DNA of 64,000 nucleotides, taken from sequence record MW373745.1. One strand, 5' to 3'. Positions 22,705 to 63,707 of the stretch are shown here, piece by piece. Under the pieces are notes generated by a model. The model made no database searches, was not told where the DNA came from, and saw nothing but the letters and a program-made list of their open reading frames with translations. Both the position numbers and the translations under genes were made by a program. The first letter of the stretch is position 1; every line of letters begins with the position of its first letter.

Positions 22705-23292
22705 ATAGCTAACTTTAAAGAATTTTTATTGCTGCAAGAGTCTTTGACTAAAAAGACTAATTATATTAAGCTCGGTGAGAAATACATTAATATGTTTAAT
22801 CAAGTTCTGGATGCAAAGAAATATCTGCAAATATCTCTTTTTAATGTAGATAATAAACAATACTATTGCATCCTAATAATGAAGGATTCAAAGTTGGAAC
22901 CACATTTTGGAGTCTTTTATGAAAATAAATTCAATGAGTTGGTAGAAGCTTTTAAAAATAAAGACACGAAGAGAATCAGTGATTTAGTGAATAGTGAGCT
23001 TTTTATTCAAAAAGATGGTTATCTAAATTCTGATGTAAATTTTCTAAAAGTATTATCATATGTGTTTTCAGTTTTAGTGGATTACCTGGCAATAAAGCCG
23101 ATAGGATTTGTAAAAATTATGGGGATACCGAGAAAGTTCAATCTTTATCAAAAGGTAGTAAAAAATATCATCCAAAAAAATGAGATACCATATCATATTG
23201 TAGTAGAAGAGCAAGATGATAGCTATTCTGGTAAAATTACTGGGCAAACAAACCCTGCCAAGTCAATGATTTTAAAGTATAATTTTGCTTAG
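22705..23292 (+). CDS. Hypothetical protein, paralog of 62093-62644; apparent ATA start
   Basis: AAGGAG six nt before an in-frame ATA; EPHFG and VLSYV.SVL.DY shared with 62093. Confidence 0.6.
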   Translation: MANFKEFLLLQESLTKKTNYIKLGEKYINMFNQVLDAKKYLQISLFNVDNKQYYCILIMKDSKLEPHFGVFYENKFNELVEAFKNKDTKRISDLVNSELFIQKDGYLNSDVNFLKVLSYVFSVLVDYLAIKPIGFVKIMGIPRKFNLYQKVVKNIIQKNEIPYHIVVEEQDDSYSGKITGQTNPAKSMILKYNFA

Positions 23293-43420: not shown

Positions 43421-45628
43421 ATGAAACTATTCGAAGCTTGCTTCAATTTAGGTAATTTTGAAACTTATGAAAGATTCTATAATACAGAAACTAATAAGTC
43501 TGAAATTCAAAAAGTCTTTCTTAAGAATCAAGTTTTTATTGAGGATCCTAAAGGAGAATATACATTTTTATTAGATCCAAATATTAAACTAACAAAAGTT
43601 CAAGCTAATCAAGCTAAAGATTTAGAAACTTATGGTAAGACTAATATTGCTGCTGAACATATTAGGCAGAACTATTGGAAACTCAATGATTCAAAATATA
43701 ATAAAAATATAAGTATTTTTTATCTGGATATAGAAACTACGGCACACTCACCTATTGACACCGAAGCTTGTAGAGAAAGAATAGTTTCAATTCAAGTATA
43801 TCATAACTTAACGAATACAAATTATATTTTTACAAATGAGTTCTTTGACACCGAAGCTCATACTAAAGATTCTAAATATATTTTCGATGATAGGACTTAT
43901 GATTTTAAACTTAAATACTATCAAGTAGAAGGTGAACATAATTTATTAATTGCTTTATTTAAACTTATAGAAGCTTTAAAACCTTTATTAGTATTAGCTC
44001 ACAATGGTGAAGGTTTTGACTTTGCTTATCTTTGGAGAAGAACTGAAAAGTTAGGTTTAACTGAAGGATTTAGTCCATTTGGAAAATCTGAATTTCAAAT
44101 AAATGAATTAGATAATGGAACTAAAAAATACAGTATAAAAGCGCCCGGTGTTTTCTATATGGATACTATAGATATCTATAAGAAGTTTAGACTTAAACCG
44201 AGAGAATCTTATTCATTAGATTATATTGCAGAAGTTGAATTAGGTGAAAGAAAAGTTAATCACGATTGTTTTAAAACTTTTGATGGTTTTAGAACCGGTG
44301 AAGGATTTATTAGACCAGAAGTTGAACCTAGCAAAGAATCTATTTTAGAATATAAACTTTATAATGCTAAAGATTCTGAAGAAATAAAAAGAATTTCTAA
44401 AGAATATTTTATTCATTATAGTATTATAGATACATACTTATTATATAGAATAGATAATGCAATTAAATTATCTGATATTATGATTAGTATTGCTTCTATT
44501 ATGGGTATTCAATTACCTCAAACACTTGGAACAACAACTCCTTGGAGTACATTTATCCGAAATTATGCAATGCAAGATAAAATAGTATTACCAAATCCAA
44601 GTGAATTTAGTGGTGATGTAGAATTTAAAGGGGGCTTTGTAGCTGAACCATTAATTGGTAGATATGATTGGGTTTTTTCAGCGGACGTTACCAGTATGTA
44701 TCCTAGTCAAATTATGGCATTTAATTTAAGTTCTGAAACATTTATACCATTTTATAAATTGCCAAATGATTTACAAGAAGCTATAAATGAATTAGATCTT
44801 AATGAAGATGAACAATATCATATTAATAATTATTATAAAAATCCCGAAGCTTATAAAAAATACACGGATTTACTTATAAAGTATAATTATTGCGGATCAT
44901 TAACTGGATCTGTGTATGATAAATCTAAAAAAGGTATTCTACCAATATTAACAGAATTAGTTTTCAATCTTAGAAAAGCAGCTAAAAAAGAAATGTTAAA
45001 ATATGAGCAAATGGCTGAAGATGCTAAAGAACCTGAATTAATACAAAAATACCAAGCATTAGCAACTGAATTGGATGTCAATCAATTGACATTTAAGATT
45101 TTAATTAACTCATTATATGGAGCTTGTGGAAATAAACATTTTATTCTATATAATAAAGAAATCGCTAAAGCTATCACAGGAAATTCAAGATTTTATATAA
45201 ATCTTATGAGTAAAAATATCAATAATTTTTTGTGCGATTTATGTGGTTCTGGAAATTATATAATTTATAATGATACTGACTCCGTTGTTGGGGATTCAAT
45301 TATTAAAGTAAATGGTAAAAATATTAAAATAGAAGATTTTTATGATTCTATAAAAGTTGATCCTATTGTTACAAAATCTGGTAATAATGTAAAATTAGTA
45401 GATAATTGTTTTACAGATTCTGTAAATAAAAACTTACAAATTGAAACTAAAAAAATTAATTATATAATGAAACATAAAGTTAAGAAGGAATTTTTTAAAA
45501 TAAAAGTCAATAATAAAGAAGTGGTCGTAACCGAAGATCATAGCATTATGGTTTTAAGAAATTCTGAATTAATTGAGGTTAAACCAAGAGATATTAAAAC
45601 AGGAGACTTAATAATATTAAATGACTGA
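43421..45628 (+). CDS. Family B DNA polymerase N-fragment fused to split intein IntN (45281-45625, 115 aa)
   Basis: DIET exonuclease, DVTSMYPS motif A, KILINSLYG motif B, YNDTD followed by SVVGDS...TEDHS intein; T4 gp43-like. Confidence 0.95.
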   Translation: MKLFEACFNLGNFETYERFYNTETNKSEIQKVFLKNQVFIEDPKGEYTFLLDPNIKLTKVQANQAKDLETYGKTNIAAEHIRQNYWKLNDSKYNKNISIFYLDIETTAHSPIDTEACRERIVSIQVYHNLTNTNYIFTNEFFDTEAHTKDSKYIFDDRTYDFKLKYYQVEGEHNLLIALFKLIEALKPLLVLAHNGEGFDFAYLWRRTEKLGLTEGFSPFGKSEFQINELDNGTKKYSIKAPGVFYMDTIDIYKKFRLKPRESYSLDYIAEVELGERKVNHDCFKTFDGFRTGEGFIRPEVEPSKESILEYKLYNAKDSEEIKRISKEYFIHYSIIDTYLLYRIDNAIKLSDIMISIASIMGIQLPQTLGTTTPWSTFIRNYAMQDKIVLPNPSEFSGDVEFKGGFVAEPLIGRYDWVFSADVTSMYPSQIMAFNLSSETFIPFYKLPNDLQEAINELDLNEDEQYHINNYYKNPEAYKKYTDLLIKYNYCGSLTGSVYDKSKKGILPILTELVFNLRKAAKKEMLKYEQMAEDAKEPELIQKYQALATELDVNQLTFKILINSLYGACGNKHFILYNKEIAKAITGNSRFYINLMSKNINNFLCDLCGSGNYIIYNDTDSVVGDSIIKVNGKNIKIEDFYDSIKVDPIVTKSGNNVKLVDNCFTDSVNKNLQIETKKINYIMKHKVKKEFFKIKVNNKEVVVTEDHSIMVLRNSELIEVKPRDIKTGDLIILND

Positions 45629-46623
45629 ATCATATTTTAACGATTTCAAACAATTTTTAAAATCTGAAGTTAAAAATGGTAAATTGCCTTATACAACTAT
45701 GTACAAATATTTACTCACGTTTAGCGAATACAGACCTAAAAATTTATACGCGCGATACCGACGTTTACGCAAATACACTAAGGGTGTTATAACGAAATAT
45801 AAATGTTTGCTGCTATACGGTAAAACCGGAGCGCTAAAAAAAATGGACAAGTTATTGTAATAGACAAGCATATACAAATACAAAAGAATATAAAATGAAT
45901 GTGCTGGGTATGAGTGATTATGAAGTAGATTGTTATAATCAATCCAGAGCGGTGACTAAGAAAAATTTAATAATGCGTTACGGTGAAGACCTAGGTAATA
46001 AAAAATGGGAGGATTATAGACATAGACAGGCATACACAAATACAAAAGAATACTTTGTTGAAAAATATGGTGAAATTGTAGGCGAACAGAAATATTATAA
46101 CATCAACGCAAGTAAAGCAATCACTCGTGAAAATCTTATTAAAAAATATGGTGAATACCTAGGTAATGAAAAGTGGCTTAATTTTTTAAATAACAAAAAG
46201 TGTATAGGTTATTCAAAAATGGCTACAAAATTATTTGAAGAATTGGAATCCAAATTAGGAAATAATTATACTTTTTATTATGAACCAAAAACAAGAGAAA
46301 TAGTATTAAATTCTAACGGAACTCCGTATTTTTATGATTGTTATATCAAAGAATTAAAATTAATAATAGAATTTAATGGTGATGTATTTCACGCAAATCC
46401 TAAAATATTTAATAGCCACGACAATCCCAATCCATTTGACAAGACATTGACTACTGAGGAAATATGAGAAGCAGATAATAGAAAAATTAATCACGCTTTA
46501 GATAATGGCTATAAAATTATAATAATTTGGGAAAACGAACTTAGAATTAATACAAATTTAAGTAATATTATTATAGAATATATAAAATCGAATAATTTAT
46601 TAGATTTAAAGGAGTTTATTTGA
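45621..46623 (+). pseudogene. Vsr/DUF559-like homing endonuclease disrupted by a frameshift (A8, ~45836-45843) and a TGA (46465-46467)
   Basis: KW..Y..RQAYTNTKEY repeats continue across the frameshift; YDCY..IIEFNGDVFH then EEI*EADNRKI..ALDNGYKIIIIWE in frame to 46623. Confidence 0.75.
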
Positions 46624-47525
46624 TAGTAACTGAAAATTTCCAAGTAGAATCTTTAGGTATCCAAGAATTAGATGTCTATGATATTGAAGTAGATTCTAAT
46701 CATAATTTTTTTGCTAATGATATATTAGTTCATAACAGTTGTTATGTTCAAGTACCTAATATTATAAACGAAAAATTACCAAAAGACCCACAATTAGCAA
46801 CAGATATAATTGATAAATTTATAGAAACTAAAATACAACCGGTAATTAACACAAGCTCACAAGAATTAGGGTCTATTTTTAATGCTTTAGATGCTTCAAG
46901 AATTTCTGCAAAGCGTGAAGCGATTGCAAGCTCTGCTGTGTTTGTAGCAAAGAAAAGATATTTTATGAAAGTTATAGATTCTGAAGGTGTTAGGTTCAGT
47001 GAACCTTATCTTAAAACAATGGGTATCGATATTGTCAGATCCAGTACACCAGCATTTTCTAAAAAATATCTTAAAAAATCCGTCAATATTATATTAGAAA
47101 GTACAGAAGAAGAACTTAAAGAATGGTTAAAAAATATTAGATCATTATACCTGGGTCAAAATCTAATGGATATTGCTAAGATATCTTCGGTCAGTTCTAG
47201 CAAATATAAACTTGGTGTGGATAAATCCATACCGATTAATTCAAGAGCTTTCTTGGTATCAAATCATTATATAAATAGTCTAAATACAGGTGAGTTTCAA
47301 CCATTAGAATTAGGCGAAAAGGTTCGTATGCTATATCTTAGAGAACCTAACCCATTAAAATCTAACATTTTTGCTTTTAATAATGAAAAATTTGCAAATG
47401 TATTTAAAGATTATATAGATTGGGATACTAATTTTAATAAGTTCTTTTTAAAACCACTTGAAATAATGACAGACCCACTTAATTATAATTTACATAAAGA
47501 AACTGAAACTTTGGAGGAATGGTAA
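46620..47525 (+). CDS. Split intein IntC (39 aa, 46620-46736) fused to DNA polymerase C-fragment
   Basis: VYDIEV..NHNFFAN.ILVHN followed by SCY; AKKRY and MGIDIVRSSTP PolB motifs; AAGGAG RBS, TTG start. Confidence 0.95.
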   Translation: MIVTENFQVESLGIQELDVYDIEVDSNHNFFANDILVHNSCYVQVPNIINEKLPKDPQLATDIIDKFIETKIQPVINTSSQELGSIFNALDASRISAKREAIASSAVFVAKKRYFMKVIDSEGVRFSEPYLKTMGIDIVRSSTPAFSKKYLKKSVNIILESTEEELKEWLKNIRSLYLGQNLMDIAKISSVSSSKYKLGVDKSIPINSRAFLVSNHYINSLNTGEFQPLELGEKVRMLYLREPNPLKSNIFAFNNEKFANVFKDYIDWDTNFNKFFLKPLEIMTDPLNYNLHKETETLEEW

Positions 47526-59619: not shown

Positions 59620-60078
59620 ATGATAATAAAAGAAACCATTTCCTCAACATCTTTTAGAGAATACTTATATGAACAAGCTTTTAGTAAAGATGTAATGATC
59701 TCTAAATTTACTAACAATTCAGACAACATTTTTAATCATATTTTAAAAGTCTTAGTATATGATGATAATTTAAATAATAAAAAACATTTAAGAGAGATGT
59801 CAGGAATAGTAAGATCTTTACAAAACAAAACTATCAAATCAAAAATAACACCGGAAGACTTGTATCATATTTTCTATGGAAATATTGAAGAAGATTCGAA
59901 TCTGAAACAATATATCTTGGATTTAGAGATTAATTACGGTTCTCTTCAAAAATCTAAGCTATCAGAAAATGAGATACATTTCAGACTAGCTAGAATCTTT
60001 AAAAGATTATCAAGTGAGATATTAACAAAGTCATTCAAGTCTTTTGAAAAATATCCAGAACTAAGGGATAGATTTTAA
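59620..60078 (+). CDS. Hypothetical protein, DUF29-like
   Basis: IFNHILK.L.Y...H..EM helix pattern; FREYLYEQA leader. Confidence 0.35.
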   Translation: MIIKETISSTSFREYLYEQAFSKDVMISKFTNNSDNIFNHILKVLVYDDNLNNKKHLREMSGIVRSLQNKTIKSKITPEDLYHIFYGNIEEDSNLKQYILDLEINYGSLQKSKLSENEIHFRLARIFKRLSSEILTKSFKSFEKYPELRDRF

Positions 60079-60178: not shown

Positions 60179-61783
60179 TTGAATTTAGACACTATACATA
60201 TTGTTAAAAATAACGGAGAACGTGAAATATTCGATGCTGAAAAAATACATAAACACTTACATTTTGCTTGTCAAAACCTCGATGTAGATATTATTAGCAT
60301 TATTAAAGATGCTAGATTAAAAATATTTGATGGTGCCAAAAGTGTAGACATACAAGATTCTTTAATTAAATCTGCACAAGAAAAAATCAGTGAAGATTCT
60401 CCAGATTATGAGTTAGTTGCTGGTAGATTATTAAATCAAAAACTCAGAAAAGAAGTTTATAAACAATACACACCATTAGATTTTAAATCACAAGTTAAAG
60501 AACGTATTAAAAAAGGTTTCTATACTGAAGATCTTAATGCTTATAGTGATGAAGAGCTTGACTATTTTGGATCTTTAATTAATTATGAATTAGATAACGA
60601 ACTACCTTACAGCGCATTAAATCAAATGTATTCTAAGTACTTGATCAAACATAATAAAAAATGCATTGAGGTTCCTCAAGAAGTTTTTATATTGATACCA
60701 ATGGCTATTTTTTATAATACCGATATAGAATATAGAAAAAAATATGTTAAACTTGGGTATGAATTATTATCACAGCGTAAAATTTCTTTACCTACTCCTA
60801 TTATGAATGGAGCAAGAACAAGTTATAAGAAATTTATATCTTGTAATTTATTAAACTTTGGTGATTCAGTTGAAAGCTTTGCTAGGGGTTTAGAAGCTGT
60901 TTTAAAATGCACCAGTGCTAAAAGTGGTTTAGGTATCAATACAAGTTTCATCAGAGGTTTAGGAGCTCCAGTAGGTAAACCTTCAAGATTAGATCATACT
61001 GGTATGCTGCCGATCGTTAAAGCCATTGAATCTGCTACGTCTGCGCTGATTCAGCACGGCAGGGGCGGTGCAAGCAATCTGTCAATGCCTTTCTTTCACT
61101 ACGAAATAGAATTATTTTCACAACTAGGTGATTCTAAAGGATCTTTAGAAAATAGGGCTAGACATACTGATCAAACTATTATCATCAATAAATGGTTCTT
61201 AGAAAAAGCTCTTAATAAAGAGGATATATTTTTATTCCATATGAATGCTGTAGGTAATAAGGATCCCAAATTAGATTTATATGATGCCTTAGGTGATTAT
61301 AAAAGATTCGATGAATTATATAAACATTATAGCGCTAAAGTTCCTAATAAAAGTAAAAAGAAAATTAATGCTTATGATTTATTATCTTTAATTATAAATG
61401 AGAGAATGATTACTGGTAGAGTTTATATTGTTTTTGCGGATAACTTCGTTAATTCAAGTTTTAAAGAAAATCTATATATGACAAATCTTTGTTGTTTAGC
61501 AGGTGATACAATTGTTGAAACTTCACAAGGGCCTAAATTTCTCAAAGATATTAAAAAAGGAGATCTTGTTTTAAGTTATAATCAAGATACAAAAAAATAT
61601 GAATACAAAGAAGTACTAGCAGCTGTTTTAACAAATCCGGAAGCTGAAGTTTTTGAAGTAGAATTCAATGGTAAAGTGGTCATTTGCACTAGTGATCATA
61701 AATTCTTAACCCAAAGGGGTTATATTGAAGCTCAACATCTTTTAGAAAGTGATACAATAGTAGAATGTTCCTCCCGTATTTAG
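60179..61783 (+). CDS. nrdA: Class Ia ribonucleotide reductase alpha N-fragment fused to split intein IntN (61493-61780, 96 aa)
   Basis: ATP cone, PTPIMNGART, SCN, GRGGA; TNLC followed by CLAGDT...CTSDHKFLT.RG intein. Confidence 0.93.
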   Translation: MNLDTIHIVKNNGEREIFDAEKIHKHLHFACQNLDVDIISIIKDARLKIFDGAKSVDIQDSLIKSAQEKISEDSPDYELVAGRLLNQKLRKEVYKQYTPLDFKSQVKERIKKGFYTEDLNAYSDEELDYFGSLINYELDNELPYSALNQMYSKYLIKHNKKCIEVPQEVFILIPMAIFYNTDIEYRKKYVKLGYELLSQRKISLPTPIMNGARTSYKKFISCNLLNFGDSVESFARGLEAVLKCTSAKSGLGINTSFIRGLGAPVGKPSRLDHTGMLPIVKAIESATSALIQHGRGGASNLSMPFFHYEIELFSQLGDSKGSLENRARHTDQTIIINKWFLEKALNKEDIFLFHMNAVGNKDPKLDLYDALGDYKRFDELYKHYSAKVPNKSKKKINAYDLLSLIINERMITGRVYIVFADNFVNSSFKENLYMTNLCCLAGDTIVETSQGPKFLKDIKKGDLVLSYNQDTKKYEYKEVLAAVLTNPEAEVFEVEFNGKVVICTSDHKFLTQRGYIEAQHLLESDTIVECSSRI

Positions 61784-62139
61784 AAGAAATAACATATTTA
61801 GATAAACCGAATAAACATAATCTTAATTTCTTTAGAAAAACATATTTAATGGATTTCTTTGAATTAGGATTAGTATTCGACGAAAATGAAGATTTAATTG
61901 GTATTAAAAATGAAGATACTACATCAGGCTATTTACCACTACATTTTAATAGTATATTAGAACTCTCAGAGTTTTTATATGCTTTTAATGGCGCGTGGGT
62001 AGCAAAGAAAGTATTGGATGATTGCCAGAAAATGGATATGGTGATTAAGCAAATGTCTGAAGAACTCGGTATACCAGAAGAGGTTATTAGAAATGGCAAG
62101 TTTCAAAGAAAGGGCTATTTTAAGAATGGCTACATTTAG
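61765..62139 (+). CDS. Hypothetical protein inside the split nrdA
   Basis: 124-aa ORF overlapping both neighbours; no nuclease motif recognised. Confidence 0.6.
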   Translation: MFLPYLEEITYLDKPNKHNLNFFRKTYLMDFFELGLVFDENEDLIGIKNEDTTSGYLPLHFNSILELSEFLYAFNGAWVAKKVLDDCQKMDMVIKQMSEELGIPEEVIRNGKFQRKGYFKNGYI

Positions 62140-62644
62140 ACACAATAACTTGTTATATTATGTTATAATTGAAAGGAGAAGGGGTGTCAAAGGTGACCAT
62201 ACTTGTGTAGAACCACATTTTGGTGCTTTTGTAACTGATATAGAAAATATCTTAAAAATTTCTGATACTAAGCAATTGTTGTTACAACTCAAACACAGAA
62301 AGGATATTTTAAAGATTTTAAACCCAGATAAAATAGAAACAAATTCTCAATTAGTTTTATCCTATGTATTAAGTGTTCTAAGAGATTATATTAAAGAACA
62401 TTATACATTGTTTATTAAGCTTGTGACTAATGAAGAATTAATGAAAAAATATATAAAATTATTACCTTATGTTTGTACTGATTTAAAGTATACTCCTATA
62501 GATATTTCAAATGAAATTAGAACGGATTTTGATGGAACTAGGAAGCGTTTTCTTGTGCTATTGCTCAGAAAATCAAAAGATTTAGACAAACAAGATGTAC
62601 TAAAATCACTTAGTAATATCAATTTAAGTAATTATATATTATAA
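62093..62644 (+). CDS. Hypothetical protein inside the split nrdA; paralog of 22705-23292
   Basis: EPHFG.F and VLSYVLSVL.DY. Confidence 0.65.
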   Translation: MASFKERAILRMATFRHNNLLYYVIIERRRGVKGDHTCVEPHFGAFVTDIENILKISDTKQLLLQLKHRKDILKILNPDKIETNSQLVLSYVLSVLRDYIKEHYTLFIKLVTNEELMKKYIKLLPYVCTDLKYTPIDISNEIRTDFDGTRKRFLVLLLRKSKDLDKQDVLKSLSNINLSNYIL

Positions 62645-62663
62645 TAACAATAAAAGAGGTGCT

Positions 62664-63707
62664 ATGATAAAAATAACTAAAAAAACTGAAAAAATACCTG
62701 TATACGATATAGAAGTTAAGGATAATCATAACTTTTTTGCAAATGGATTGTGTGTTCACAATTGTGAAATATCTGTGCCTAGTCATAGTTTAGATAATTA
62801 TAGGGGTATACCAGGAGAACTAGGAACTTGTATCTTAGGTAATATAAATTTTGGACATTCTAAAGAATCTGACATCCCAAAAGTTGCTGATTTCTTAGTT
62901 AGGTTCTTAGATAATATGATTGATATTTCTGATTTTGCTATGCCAGAAATTGAATACTCAGCTACAAAACGTAGAACATTAGGTATTGGTGTTTCTAACT
63001 TATTTGGATATCTTGCTAAATCGAAATTATTTTACAATACAAAAGAAGCACGCGAACATATTAATGATTTAATGGAATTATTTTATTTTAACTTAGTTAA
63101 AACTTCAATAGATTTAGCAAAAGAACGAGGTGCTTGTGAATTATATAATGAATCTTTTTATAGTGATAATAAGTTTATATTCGAAAGATATTTAGAAGCT
63201 GGGATTAAACCTGAATTTAAAACAAAATTAGATTGGGAGTCACTTCGTGAAGAATTATCTAAATACGGTATGCGCCATTCAAGCTTGTCAGCTGTACCGC
63301 CCGCTGGGAACAGTTCAAAGCCAAGCTCAGCAACACCTGGTATCGAACCTCCAAGAGAATTAGTAACTATTAAAACAGAAAAAAGTTCTACTGTAAAACA
63401 GTTGGTTCCTTTCTATAAAACAGCCAAAAAATATTATACGACTGCTTGGGGTGTTGACTTTAATAATAAAGATTATCTTAAATTAGTGAGTACAATACAA
63501 AGATATGTAGATCAAAGTATTAGTACAAATCAATATTATAATATCGTAGAAACTAAAAAAGTTAATATTGAAGATGTTATAGAAGAATTTATAGAATGCT
63601 TCAATTTAGGTGTCAAATCATTGTATTATGCTAATTTTAGAACTACAGATGATGCAGATGGTGATCAAGTAATTGAAGGTTGTGGGTCTGGAGGTTGTAG
63701 CGTTTAA
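62664..63707 (+). CDS. nrdA: Split intein IntC (33 aa, 62664-62762) fused to NrdA C-fragment
   Basis: VYDIEV..NHNFFANG..VHN followed by CEI; TCILG, RRTLGIG, PPAGNSS, KSLYY and C-terminal CGSGGC. Confidence 0.93.
   Translation: MIKITKKTEKIPVYDIEVKDNHNFFANGLCVHNCEISVPSHSLDNYRGIPGELGTCILGNINFGHSKESDIPKVADFLVRFLDNMIDISDFAMPEIEYSATKRRTLGIGVSNLFGYLAKSKLFYNTKEAREHINDLMELFYFNLVKTSIDLAKERGACELYNESFYSDNKFIFERYLEAGIKPEFKTKLDWESLREELSKYGMRHSSLSAVPPAGNSSKPSSATPGIEPPRELVTIKTEKSSTVKQLVPFYKTAKKYYTTAWGVDFNNKDYLKLVSTIQRYVDQSISTNQYYNIVETKKVNIEDVIEEFIECFNLGVKSLYYANFRTTDDADGDQVIEGCGSGGCSV

Follow-up and report, generated by a model that had tools for sequence, protein, structure and literature searches.

A fractured nrdA gene in Campylobacter Firehammervirus phages with two middle genes unlike known homing endonucleases

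Introduction

Fractured genes first became known from metagenomic fragments. In the loci reported by Dassa et al. 2009 (PMC2677866), among them NrdA-1 to NrdA-7, NrdJ-1 and gp41-1, a split intein interrupts the host gene and a free-standing endonuclease gene lies between the two halves. A related case is known from Campylobacter phages, where trans-splicing of the PolB1 split intein of phage CP21 has been shown experimentally (Angew Chem 2025, PMC12707363). A phage nrdA can also be divided without an intein, as in Aeromonas phage Aeh1, whose nrdA is split by the HNH endonuclease gene mobE and still gives an active reductase, the two NrdA chains being assembled non-covalently (Friedrich et al. 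2007; Crona et al. 2011, PMC3045599). For Campylobacter phage CPt10, the interrupted nrdA has been reported as a pseudogene (CPt10 GenBank annotation; Dwivedi et al. 2013), and the gene is stated not to be maintained (PMC3653736).

Here, we analyze an nrdA locus of this kind in a 64,000-nucleotide stretch of record MW373745.1, referred to below as the window. The stretch belongs to a Campylobacter Firehammervirus and is 100% identical to CJLB-13 and 99.9% identical to F379. The arrangement of the locus is that of the fractured genes of Dassa et al., and its unusual part is the pair of middle genes, which are unlike known homing endonucleases.

Results

A class-1 split intein interrupts nrdA after the thiyl-radical cysteine

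The class Ia nrdA gene of the window is cut after the thiyl-radical Cys, as NLC|CEI, by a class-1 split intein, and the coordinates given for the split locus in a preliminary description of this DNA all hold (Table 1). The host gene lies in two co-oriented ORFs, the first ending and the second starting with an intein half.

Table 1. Coordinates of the split nrdA locus and of related features, counted from the first nucleotide of the window
Feature	Position	Strand	Description
Free-standing ORF B paralogue, core phrog_26017 copy	22729..23292	+	phrog_26017 E 2.6e-125; 25-28% identical to ORF B; shared invariant residues
PolB1 split intein	45281-46739		In the DNA polymerase gene
N-half ORF	60179-61783	+	438-aa extein ending TNLC, then IntN
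nrdA N-extein, 438 aa	60179..61492	+	ATP-cone, all-alpha domain, first part of barrel; ends TNLC
IntN, 96 aa + stop (61781-61783)	61493..61783	+	Cys1 (CLAGD), block B T-S-D-H
Nearly invariant stretch, ~140 nt	61717..61860	+	IntN tail, IntN stop, ORF A start, ORF A codons 1-28
ORF A, 124 aa here	61765..62139	+	Overlaps IntN end by 19 nt; acidic, pI 4.8; orphan
ORF B, 183 aa here	62093..62644	+	Basic, pI 9.1-9.5; divergent phrog_26017 member
18-nt direct repeat, single remaining copy	62093..62110	+	Marks 102-nt in-frame deletion relative to F379, WX1, CC_R7 and IBB35
Shine-Dalgarno-like AAGAGGTG	62653..62661	+	3-10 nt 5' of IntC start codon; read from sequence
C-half ORF	62664-63707	+	IntC of 33 aa ending VHN, then Cys+1 (62763-62765) and EI
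IntC, 33 aa	62664..62762	+	Basic N-terminus; block F VYDIEV..NHNFF; block G ending H-N
nrdA C-extein, 314 aa	62763..63707	+	Starts Cys+1, E-I; rest of barrel; C-terminal Cys pair

The ATP-cone, RNR all-alpha and RNR barrel domains are distributed over both nrdA ORFs in Pfam and NCBIfam, with PF03477, PF00317 and PF02867 spanning both halves (profile positions 2-213 and 222-522) and NF006578 matched by the two halves at 4-428 and 440-760 of its 761 positions. Together with the N-x-C-x-E active-site loop, these domains place the gene in class Ia NrdA. Cys+1 corresponds to position 440 of the NCBIfam NrdA model (761 positions); if the model positions follow the E. coli NrdA numbering, as we assume, the residue preceding the intein would be the thiyl-radical Cys439. 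The Glu of the E-I that opens the C-extein is the equivalent of the catalytic Glu441.

The two intein halves, always searched separately, are both recognized by intein profiles. The Cys at 61493-61495 opens the block A sequence CLAGD and is where the Hint and intein N-terminal profiles begin (PT-HINT, E 5e-9; Intein_splicing; intein_Nterm, 23.5 bits), the Pfam and NCBIfam matches of this kind covering residues 438-530 of the first nrdA ORF. The block B motif T-S-D-H reads T-G-D-H in L047. For IntC, intein_Cterm is matched on residues 12-34 of the second ORF (TIGR01443, 39.1 bits against a cut-off of 15.6; E 5.6e-10), as are positions 124-155 of the Intein_splicing profile, and block G ends in V-H-N directly before Cys+1 at 62763. 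Moreover, when the halves are compared with the contiguous 146-aa mini-intein of CP220, IntN aligns to residues 2-107 and IntC to residues 126-146. The first ORF terminates at 61781-61783 and the second begins at 62664, which places the halves on separate polypeptides, and the break falls at the endonuclease insertion loop. Thus, the splicing residues are intact on both sides of the NLC|CEI junction, in agreement with the preliminary description of an IntN of 96 aa with Cys1 and an IntC of 33 aa followed by Cys+1. The nearest relatives of this intein sit in canonical fractured genes, flanking PD-(D/E)xK-like, GIY-YIG-like or HNH genes.

Every part of the locus is under purifying selection. The dN/dS is 0.02-0.04 for the N-extein (compared with CPt10, WX1, CC_R7 and L047) and 0.02-0.06 for the C-extein, the exteins of split-bearing lineages remaining at 0.02-0.06 with dS up to 0.83. 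For the intein, it is 0.15 for IntN compared with L047 and 0-0.02 for IntC. These values, 0.02-0.15 on intein halves and exteins, support trans-splicing indirectly, and the split intein very probably rejoins NrdA.

Also, the end of IntN and the beginning of ORF A form a nearly invariant stretch (Table 1), which shows one or two substitutions even in CC_R7 and L047, where the neighboring dS is 0.3-0.8. One substitution in the overlap of both frames is silent in ORF A and alters an IntN residue, in favor of ORF A being coding. No special RNA fold is detected around the ORF A start (z 0.24), nor a hairpin of the kind described by Dassa et al. Regarding expression, the F379 record has a ribosome binding site annotated where AAGAGGTG lies upstream of IntC. 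Promoter and terminator scans found no terminator-like site and no TATAAATA motif inside the nrdA locus, and promoter-like sites are no commoner there than in shuffled sequence.

Two overlapping middle genes lack recognizable endonuclease features

The space between the intein halves, where a fractured gene carries a free-standing endonuclease gene, contains two ORFs (ORF A and ORF B) in which no endonuclease family, motif or fold was detected. Both are coding and under purifying selection (dN/dS 0.16-0.53). ORF A has 111-114 aa in relatives and ORF B 215-217 aa; ORF B, which is equipped with a Shine-Dalgarno sequence of its own, overlaps the stop of ORF A. A fusion of the two proteins by a +1 frameshift at the T-T-T-T-A-A overlap was considered and rejected, since the ORF B start codon and its Shine-Dalgarno sequence are conserved and codons 2-3 vary.

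The search for nucleases comprised Pfam, NCBIfam, PHROGs, a profile search of the PDB, a fold search and hhalign comparisons with endonucleases from other fractured loci. No match was found for either ORF in Pfam or NCBIfam, nor to an endonuclease PHROG at E up to 1. The PDB profile search gave nothing below E 0.39, this value being a non-significant match of ORF B residues 6-57 to the winged-helix N-domain of ribosomal protein eS10 that serves as a lead only. With hhalign, the middle ORFs matched one Vsr-like and one PD-(D/E)xK-like gene of other fractured loci with a probability of 0.2% or less. In consequence, neither ORF can be assigned to the known homing endonuclease families (LAGLIDADG, HNH, GIY-YIG, His-Cys box, PD-(D/E)xK, Vsr-like/EDxHD). 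The lack of LAGLIDADG, HNH, GIY-YIG or Vsr motifs, at first noticed by eye, was borne out by every method and extends to PD-(D/E)xK. Nevertheless, calling the two ORFs "non-nuclease" expresses absence of evidence and not a demonstration.

The structural predictions differ between both proteins. ORF A has a confident predicted fold without a match in the fold search, and no relatives were found outside this locus. The model of ORF B cannot be relied upon (pLDDT 50); the best fold matches are acetyltransferase-like and not nuclease-like, with GNAT toxins among the weak ones. The protein atlas gave no usable match for either protein, and the predicted complex of ORF B with ORF A scored 0.02 (mark 0.32), which counts neither for nor against binding.

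ORF B belongs to a phage family with a free-standing core member

ORF B is a divergent member of phrog_26017, a family without assigned function seen only in Campylobacter Firehammervirus and similar metagenome contigs. Its direct match is weak by itself (E 2.6e-4 with the window copy, 2.8e-4 with the 217-aa form). Reciprocal searches support it, since the ORF B profile retrieves P0041 at E 6.9e-6 among 1.8 billion proteins and P0041 retrieves phrog_26017 at 1.5e-41, and the joint alignment contains about 30 invariant columns. ORF B is 25-30% identical to its paralogues in the family and shares with them the E-P-H-F-G-x-F motif, the L-S-Y-V-x-S-x-L-x-D-Y helix and the order of predicted secondary structure. 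It differs in a distinct C-terminal tail of about 20 aa, and no other subfamily lies within an intein or is accompanied by ORF A.

The distribution of the family looks sporadic, one subfamily being present in several different gene neighborhoods, including directly upstream of nrdA in CC_R7. The core paralogue of the window occupies a fixed place in 15 of 15 related phage records (it is broken in CP21).

In the window, ORF B has been shortened by the deletion between 18-nt direct repeats (Table 1). The BLAST pieces overlap by 18 nt at this point, and the extra 102 nt are present in contigs from three other sequencing runs. The deletion is in frame, so that ORF B is reduced to 183 aa while ORF A is lengthened from 113 to 124 aa. 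As a result, the first 34 residues of ORF B are missing, including the family-invariant E11, S12, L14, K17 and Y20. The N-terminus has been lost repeatedly, by a frameshift in CPt10/CP20 and by deletion in the window and CJLB-12, and ORF B is shortened or frameshifted in approximately half of the isolates sequenced. Such repeated loss is consistent with a selfish gene that decays after its spread.

The element is present or precisely absent in near-identical backgrounds

IntN, ORF A, ORF B and IntC form an element of 1.27-1.37 kb (1.27 kb in the window). In CP220, CP21 and CJLB-14 the whole element is precisely absent, and these alleles read NLCCEI without interruption. The N-extein of the window shares 99.8-99.9% identity with its counterparts in CP21 and CJLB-14 and 98.2% with that of CP220, all of them empty alleles. 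In contrast, it is only 97.7% identical to that of the element-bearing CPt10, yet the element itself is 98-100% identical to the one in CPt10. Presence and absence in near-identical backgrounds can also result from ordinary homologous recombination in mixed infections, without a dedicated nuclease.

Both middle ORFs are present in every occupied allele found, and the lengths and overlaps of the ORFs are unchanged even in L047, the most divergent relative. Neither a contiguous nor an ORF-less version of this intein was found; scans of metagenomes and IMG/VR for a contiguous close relative returned CPt10 itself (99%), all other matches being at most 45% identical. The earlier proposal that the intein was fractured first and then received cargo genes is not supported by these observations. 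Nor is it favored by the neighboring second nrdA intein site, which has a mini-intein in CP220 and is ORF-split in WX1 and CP21; there, fracture corresponds to the insertion of an ORF into a mini-intein.

Discussion

Comparison with described fractured loci

The nrdA locus shares with the loci of Dassa et al. (PMC2677866) the interruption of a T4-like phage DNA-metabolism gene at an active-site motif, an IntN of about 100 aa and an IntC of about 35 aa separated at the canonical endonuclease insertion point, and independent ORFs with their own translation signals between the halves. The charge distribution is also similar: the acidic IntN (net charge -5) and the Lys-rich start of IntC resemble the negative IntN and positive IntC of NrdA-2 and NrdJ-1. 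However, the gap contains two coupled ORFs without GIY-YIG or Vsr-like similarity, and the overlaps are found at IntN/ORF A and ORF A/ORF B, whereas in the Dassa loci the end of the endonuclease gene overlaps IntC. Moreover, the integration point lies one residue after the thiyl Cys, which is the NrdJ point of Dassa et al., while the usual NrdA point is before this Cys (PMC2677866). Finally, this locus belongs to cultured phages that also offer natural empty-site alleles.

The PolB1 intein of CP21, a phage of this group, is fractured in the same manner and ends in an IntC block F/G tail very similar to that of the nrdA intein, although it is a cysteine-less Ser1/Ser+1 intein in a DNA polymerase gene and the similarity between the IntN halves is only local. 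Its gap contains two pieces of a single phrog_22677 protein with the Vsr-like motif E-F-N-G-D-x-F-H. The Aeh1 locus is alike in that an inserted selfish gene divides a phage nrdA in two and an active reductase is nevertheless made, as would be the case here. It differs in having no intein; given the intein halves of the window, covalent ligation is expected here, unlike in Aeh1.

A proposed homing-derived module as the origin of the split

The reading that we put forward, to which we give roughly an even chance, is that nrdA is a working fractured gene and that its middle module is the invader that split the intein, providing, or once having provided, homing by a protein type unrelated to the known families. 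According to this, nrdA-N/IntN, ORF A, ORF B and IntC/nrdA-C would most likely be co-transcribed, as the lack of terminator-like sites and TATAAATA motifs within the locus suggests. The acidic IntN and the basic IntC would then bring the NrdA pieces together, and class-1 protein trans-splicing would link Cys439 to Cys440 and so produce the 752-aa large subunit of a class Ia reductase. ORF A, overlapping the IntN stop, and ORF B, overlapping the ORF A stop, would constitute a translationally coupled module, and the element from IntN to IntC would act as one mobile unit. Because ORF B lacks its conserved N-terminus in this phage, the mobility function is probably impaired and splicing retained. 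The fixed ORF B paralogue in all 15 phages is not typical of a homing endonuclease and counts against a homing role.

A more specific form of this proposal, that ORF A and ORF B make up a homing endonuclease system of a new type, possibly with two components and without relationship to the established families, with the phrog_26017 paralogues being selfish genes scattered in Firehammervirus genomes, is offered only tentatively. A new nuclease type is at least as likely as cargo, both being among the possibilities that the preliminary description had raised for the middle genes.

If the genes are cargo, the split intein would be functional and ORF A and ORF B would not be nucleases, representing instead a captured duplicate of an accessory phage gene of the phrog_26017 family and its small acidic partner, perhaps a regulator, an anti-defense pair, or a toxin/antidote-like or acyltransferase-like pair. 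The gap would be protected because its deletion would kill nrdA, and the element would move only by general recombination. This is conceivable, if doubtful. In its favor, the paralogues of ORF B are free-standing genes of the phages, among them a fixed core gene, and no method gave a nuclease signal. Also, a small acidic protein encoded ahead of, and coupled to, a basic one is reminiscent of antidote/toxin or inhibitor/enzyme pairs, with which the GNAT toxins among the weak fold matches would agree, and purifying selection (dN/dS 0.17 at dS 0.5) is stronger than expected of a purely selfish gene. Nonetheless, cargo leaves unexplained how a non-mobile gene came to the exact canonical endonuclease insertion point of an intein and why the intein is never seen without the ORFs, and the frequent truncation of ORF B indicates that it is dispensable to the phage.

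It is very improbable that trans-splicing, and hence dNTP supply, is timed or gated by ORF A or ORF B binding to one of the halves IntN and IntC. The coupling of ORF A translation to the end of the IntN ORF and the near invariance of the first 28 ORF A codons and of the 140 nt around them would be circumstantial evidence for such a regulator, but helpers are not needed for splicing by known split inteins, among them the published PolB1 intein of CP21 from the same phage group, and several isolates dispense with ORF B. Scarcely tenable is the published view that nrdA was destroyed by two hypothetical genes and is decaying while the phage uses the host reductase: the CPt10 record does mark a pseudogene disrupted by two CDS, but the extein dN/dS of split-bearing lineages argues against it, the catalytic and splicing residues are all intact, the break coincides exactly with the intein boundaries and a separate ribosome binding site serves the second half.

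Implications for Campylobacter phages

Instead, the selection data indicate that these phages would make a working reductase by protein trans-splicing, which bears on the replication of Campylobacter phages considered for biocontrol. The DNA polymerase gene of the window also has a split intein, so that both enzymes would depend on trans-splicing, as the preliminary description had anticipated for dNTP supply and DNA synthesis.

The culturable phages with a fractured nrdA, natural empty-site alleles and a contiguous mini-intein allele at the second site make the creation of split inteins by homing genes testable by simple phage crosses. Moreover, the Cys1/Cys+1 pair (96 + 33 aa) is a candidate tool beside the PolB1 intein already characterized from this phage group. 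If the homing origin proposed here for ORF A and ORF B is true, this site and the second nrdA site would represent living before-and-after stages of the birth of a split intein in cultured phages. Finally, if the middle genes cut DNA, they would define a new endonuclease family, and if they do not, the gap of an intein can hold other genes.

A split intein interrupts nrdA beside the catalytic cysteine

Over the nrdA region (60179-63707), the window matches Campylobacter phage CJLB-13 at 100% identity, F379 at 99.9% and eight more Campylobacter myovirus records, mostly Firehammervirus, at 92-99%. Domain searches placed the ATP-cone, the RNR all-alpha domain and RNR barrel profile positions 1-213 in residues 1-438 of the N-half, and matches to Hint/intein N-terminal models in residues 438-530. 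In the C-half, residues 2-33 match the C-terminal end of the intein splicing domain, with a TIGR01443 match above the cut-off at residues 12-34, and the remainder of the RNR barrel lies beyond. The N-terminal intein half (IntN, 96 aa) starts with Cys and contains T-S-D-H, and the C-terminal half (IntC, 33 aa) ends in H-N, followed by Cys-Glu-Ile. Cys+1 aligns to position 440 of the NrdA model NF006578 (761 positions), whose numbering we take to be that of E. coli NrdA, so the residue preceding the intein would be the thiyl-radical Cys439. Moreover, three related phages with an uninterrupted nrdA have N-L-C-C-E-I at the intein site. The preliminary description had proposed a split intein at NLC/CEI with halves of these sizes, and this is correct to the base: ORFs, domain matches and empty alleles agree, and neither the split intein nor its position is in doubt. 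In all searches the intein and NrdA pieces were used separately.

Positions of the features discussed (window coordinates unless a related record is named)
Feature	Position	Length	Remark
nrdA N-half ORF	60179-61783	534 aa	
ORF A	61765-62139 (+)	124 aa	
ORF B	62093-62644 (+)	183 aa	
nrdA C-half ORF	62664-63707	347 aa	
phrog_37306 gene	59620-60078		variable stretch upstream of nrdA
Free-standing phrog_26017 gene	22729-23292		ORF B paralogue (195-aa subfamily); adjoins radical-SAM cassette
Polymerase split-intein gap ORF, smaller	45621-45860		phrog_22677 profile positions 31-98 of 353
Polymerase split-intein gap ORF, larger	45895-46467		phrog_22677 profile positions 114-307 of 353
Second-site nrdA intein in related records	L001:3361-3798; L003:4735-6260; L005:3362-4892		

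Constraint on nrdA and its published annotation

Pairwise Nei-Gojobori comparisons against increasingly distant relatives (synonymous divergence up to 0.83 in the most distant) gave dN/dS values of 0.02-0.04 for the N-extein and 0.02-0.06 for the C-extein, the two NrdA parts, and of 0.09-0.35 for IntN and 0-0.02 for IntC. Judged from its sequence, the nrdA of the window is free of decay. Also, the architecture is preserved nearly residue for residue in L047, a metagenome contig and the most divergent relative: the first half has 534 aa and shares a 19-nt overlap with a 111-aa ORF, which in turn has a 14-nt overlap with a 216-aa ORF; after a spacer of 19 nt comes the second half, of 347 aa. IntN has a net charge of -5, IntC begins with a Lys-rich segment, and trans-splicing by the DNA polymerase split intein of the same phage group has been demonstrated experimentally (PMC12707363). 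Low dN/dS, kept architecture, charge polarity and the proven polymerase case together make functional trans-splicing of NrdA very likely, and the split intein would almost certainly be functional.

The GenBank record of CPt10, an element-bearing relative, annotates the same locus as a pseudogene "disrupted by" two CDS, and Dwivedi et al. 2013 regarded nrdA as destroyed by two inserted genes, a reading that is highly improbable under the constraint described here. The IBB_35 record marks a single long "intein" across the ORFs, its paper describes nrdA merely as interrupted by inteins, and in the literature searched no paper calls the nrdA locus of these phages a split intein. The locus has been misread, and the arrangement itself belongs to a known class, the "fractured genes" of Dassa et al. 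2009 (PMC2677866), in which a split intein breaks phage DNA-metabolism genes and a free-standing endonuclease gene lies between the halves, NrdA accounting for seven of the loci. In that work the integration point is directly before the thiyl Cys in NrdA loci and one residue later in NrdJ. The intein reported here occupies the later, NrdJ-type point, and its halves share the charge polarity of NrdA-2 and NrdJ-1.

Recent movement of the element

Relative to the empty alleles, the insertion (the element: IntN, ORF A, ORF B and IntC) corresponds exactly to 61493-62762. The window N-extein is 99.9, 99.8 and 98.2% identical to those of the empty-site phages CJLB-14, CP21 and CP220, against 97.7% for CPt10, and the first 548 nt of the C-extein are 99.1, 98.7 and 98.5% identical, against 96.0%, whereas the element, absent from the three empty-site phages, is 98-100% identical in CPt10. 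Moreover, the nearest informative SNPs on the downstream side, at only 8 and 14 nt from the element, place the window with the empty-site phages. These identities and SNPs give the element and its flanks different histories, and on such comparisons the element is one unit that moved recently, a pattern that could be produced by homing or by ordinary recombination.

An orphan module between the intein halves

The unusual feature is a two-gene, translationally coupled orphan module where a recognisable endonuclease is expected. Relatives of the acidic ORF A (pI 4.8) were found solely at the nrdA locus, with 75-100% identity, and its AF2 model is confident (pLDDT 84.6, pTM 0.73), with a predicted topology of a helix, three strands and three helices. 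Codons 1-28 are invariant in protein: the two nucleotide changes seen leave the ORF A product unaltered, and one replaces the IntN residue encoded by the overlap, in support of a start at 61765. About 140 nt spanning the IntN stop and the ORF A start (61717-61860) are almost invariant in all relatives, the neighbouring dS being 0.3-0.8, and no RNA fold or promoter motif was found to account for this. The T4 late-promoter octamer TATAAATA is depleted in the whole window (11 occurrences, 30.7 expected from shuffles), which is what a role as a signal in this phage would predict; the nrdA locus contains none of the 11.

ORF B is basic (pI 9.1-9.5), usually 215-217 aa long in relatives, and has a dN/dS of 0.16-0.17. 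When 1.8 billion representative proteins were scanned in full with HMMER, a single distant relative emerged, P0041 (E 6.9e-6), which, like the gene adjoining it, belongs to phrog_26017, the family of ORF B. A profile search of 5.8 billion proteins gave 129 family members, none with a Pfam domain, and every named one comes from a Campylobacter phage or assembly. Three subfamilies are present: the intein copy (ORF B), a 195-aa copy found in 15/15 related phage records and broken into three pieces in CP21, and a 197-aa copy that has several different neighbourhoods, one of them the stretch immediately before nrdA in CC_R7. Family-invariant residues include E11, K17, E74-P-H-F-G, D92, K108, D132 and K143. 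In the window, 102 nt are missing between two 18-nt direct repeats, which removes 34 residues of ORF B, five of them family-invariant, and alters the ORF A tail; the full form occurs in contigs of three other sequencing runs (isolate, pig gut sample and bird sample). CPt10 and CP20 carry a 1-nt frameshift in the same region, so the ORF B N-terminus has been lost at least twice, and because of the deletion the middle module is probably impaired in the window phage.

Immediately before nrdA lies a stretch that is hypervariable even among phages almost identical elsewhere (the window and related records L001-L009), and metagenome contigs L010, L011 and L042 carry phrog_37306, phrog_31822 and phrog_26017 members in tandem arrays.

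The closest intein relatives elsewhere, at most 45% identical, reside in canonical fractured genes, with a PD-(D/E)xK-like gene, a GIY-YIG-like gene containing NUMOD repeats or an HNH gene between the halves, and one relative is a contiguous LAGLIDADG-type intein. The chances are roughly balanced that the ORF A/ORF B module is the element's homing function, as a new protein type; that it is non-nuclease cargo seems rather unlikely.

Order of events and other inteins

A second nrdA intein site, at ~63309, is polymorphic among phages and empty in the window. CP220, CPt10, CC_R7 and IBB35 have a contiguous 146-aa mini-intein there. WX1 and CP21 carry this intein too (91-98% nucleotide identity), interrupted by a 1.1-kb insert that splits it, so that NrdA comes in three pieces in WX1. 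The 372-aa ORF of the WX1 insert is of unknown family and weakly matches phrog_5104/23051 (function unknown). These alleles show that fracture in nrdA happens by ORF insertion into a mini-intein, which argues against the earlier proposal that, at the first site, fracture came first and cargo later. IBB35 has a third nrdA intein, of 169 aa, at approximately extein residue 297.

In the polymerase gene, both gap ORFs match phrog_22677 in successive parts and thus are pieces of one broken gene, the larger with a Vsr-like E-F-N-G-D-x-F-H motif. The sole match of a high-depth pig gut contig is a 47-nt segment of IntC block F/G (62699-62745), which fits a near-identical IntC tail common to other inteins, e.g. 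the polymerase intein. Conceivably, the nrdA and polymerase split inteins could cross-react when both are in one cell. On a contig of a related phage, taken from a Campylobacter assembly (L045:1-921), the gene for a UvsX/RecA-like protein gives a faint match to an intein. In this phage group, replication and recombination genes may often carry inteins.
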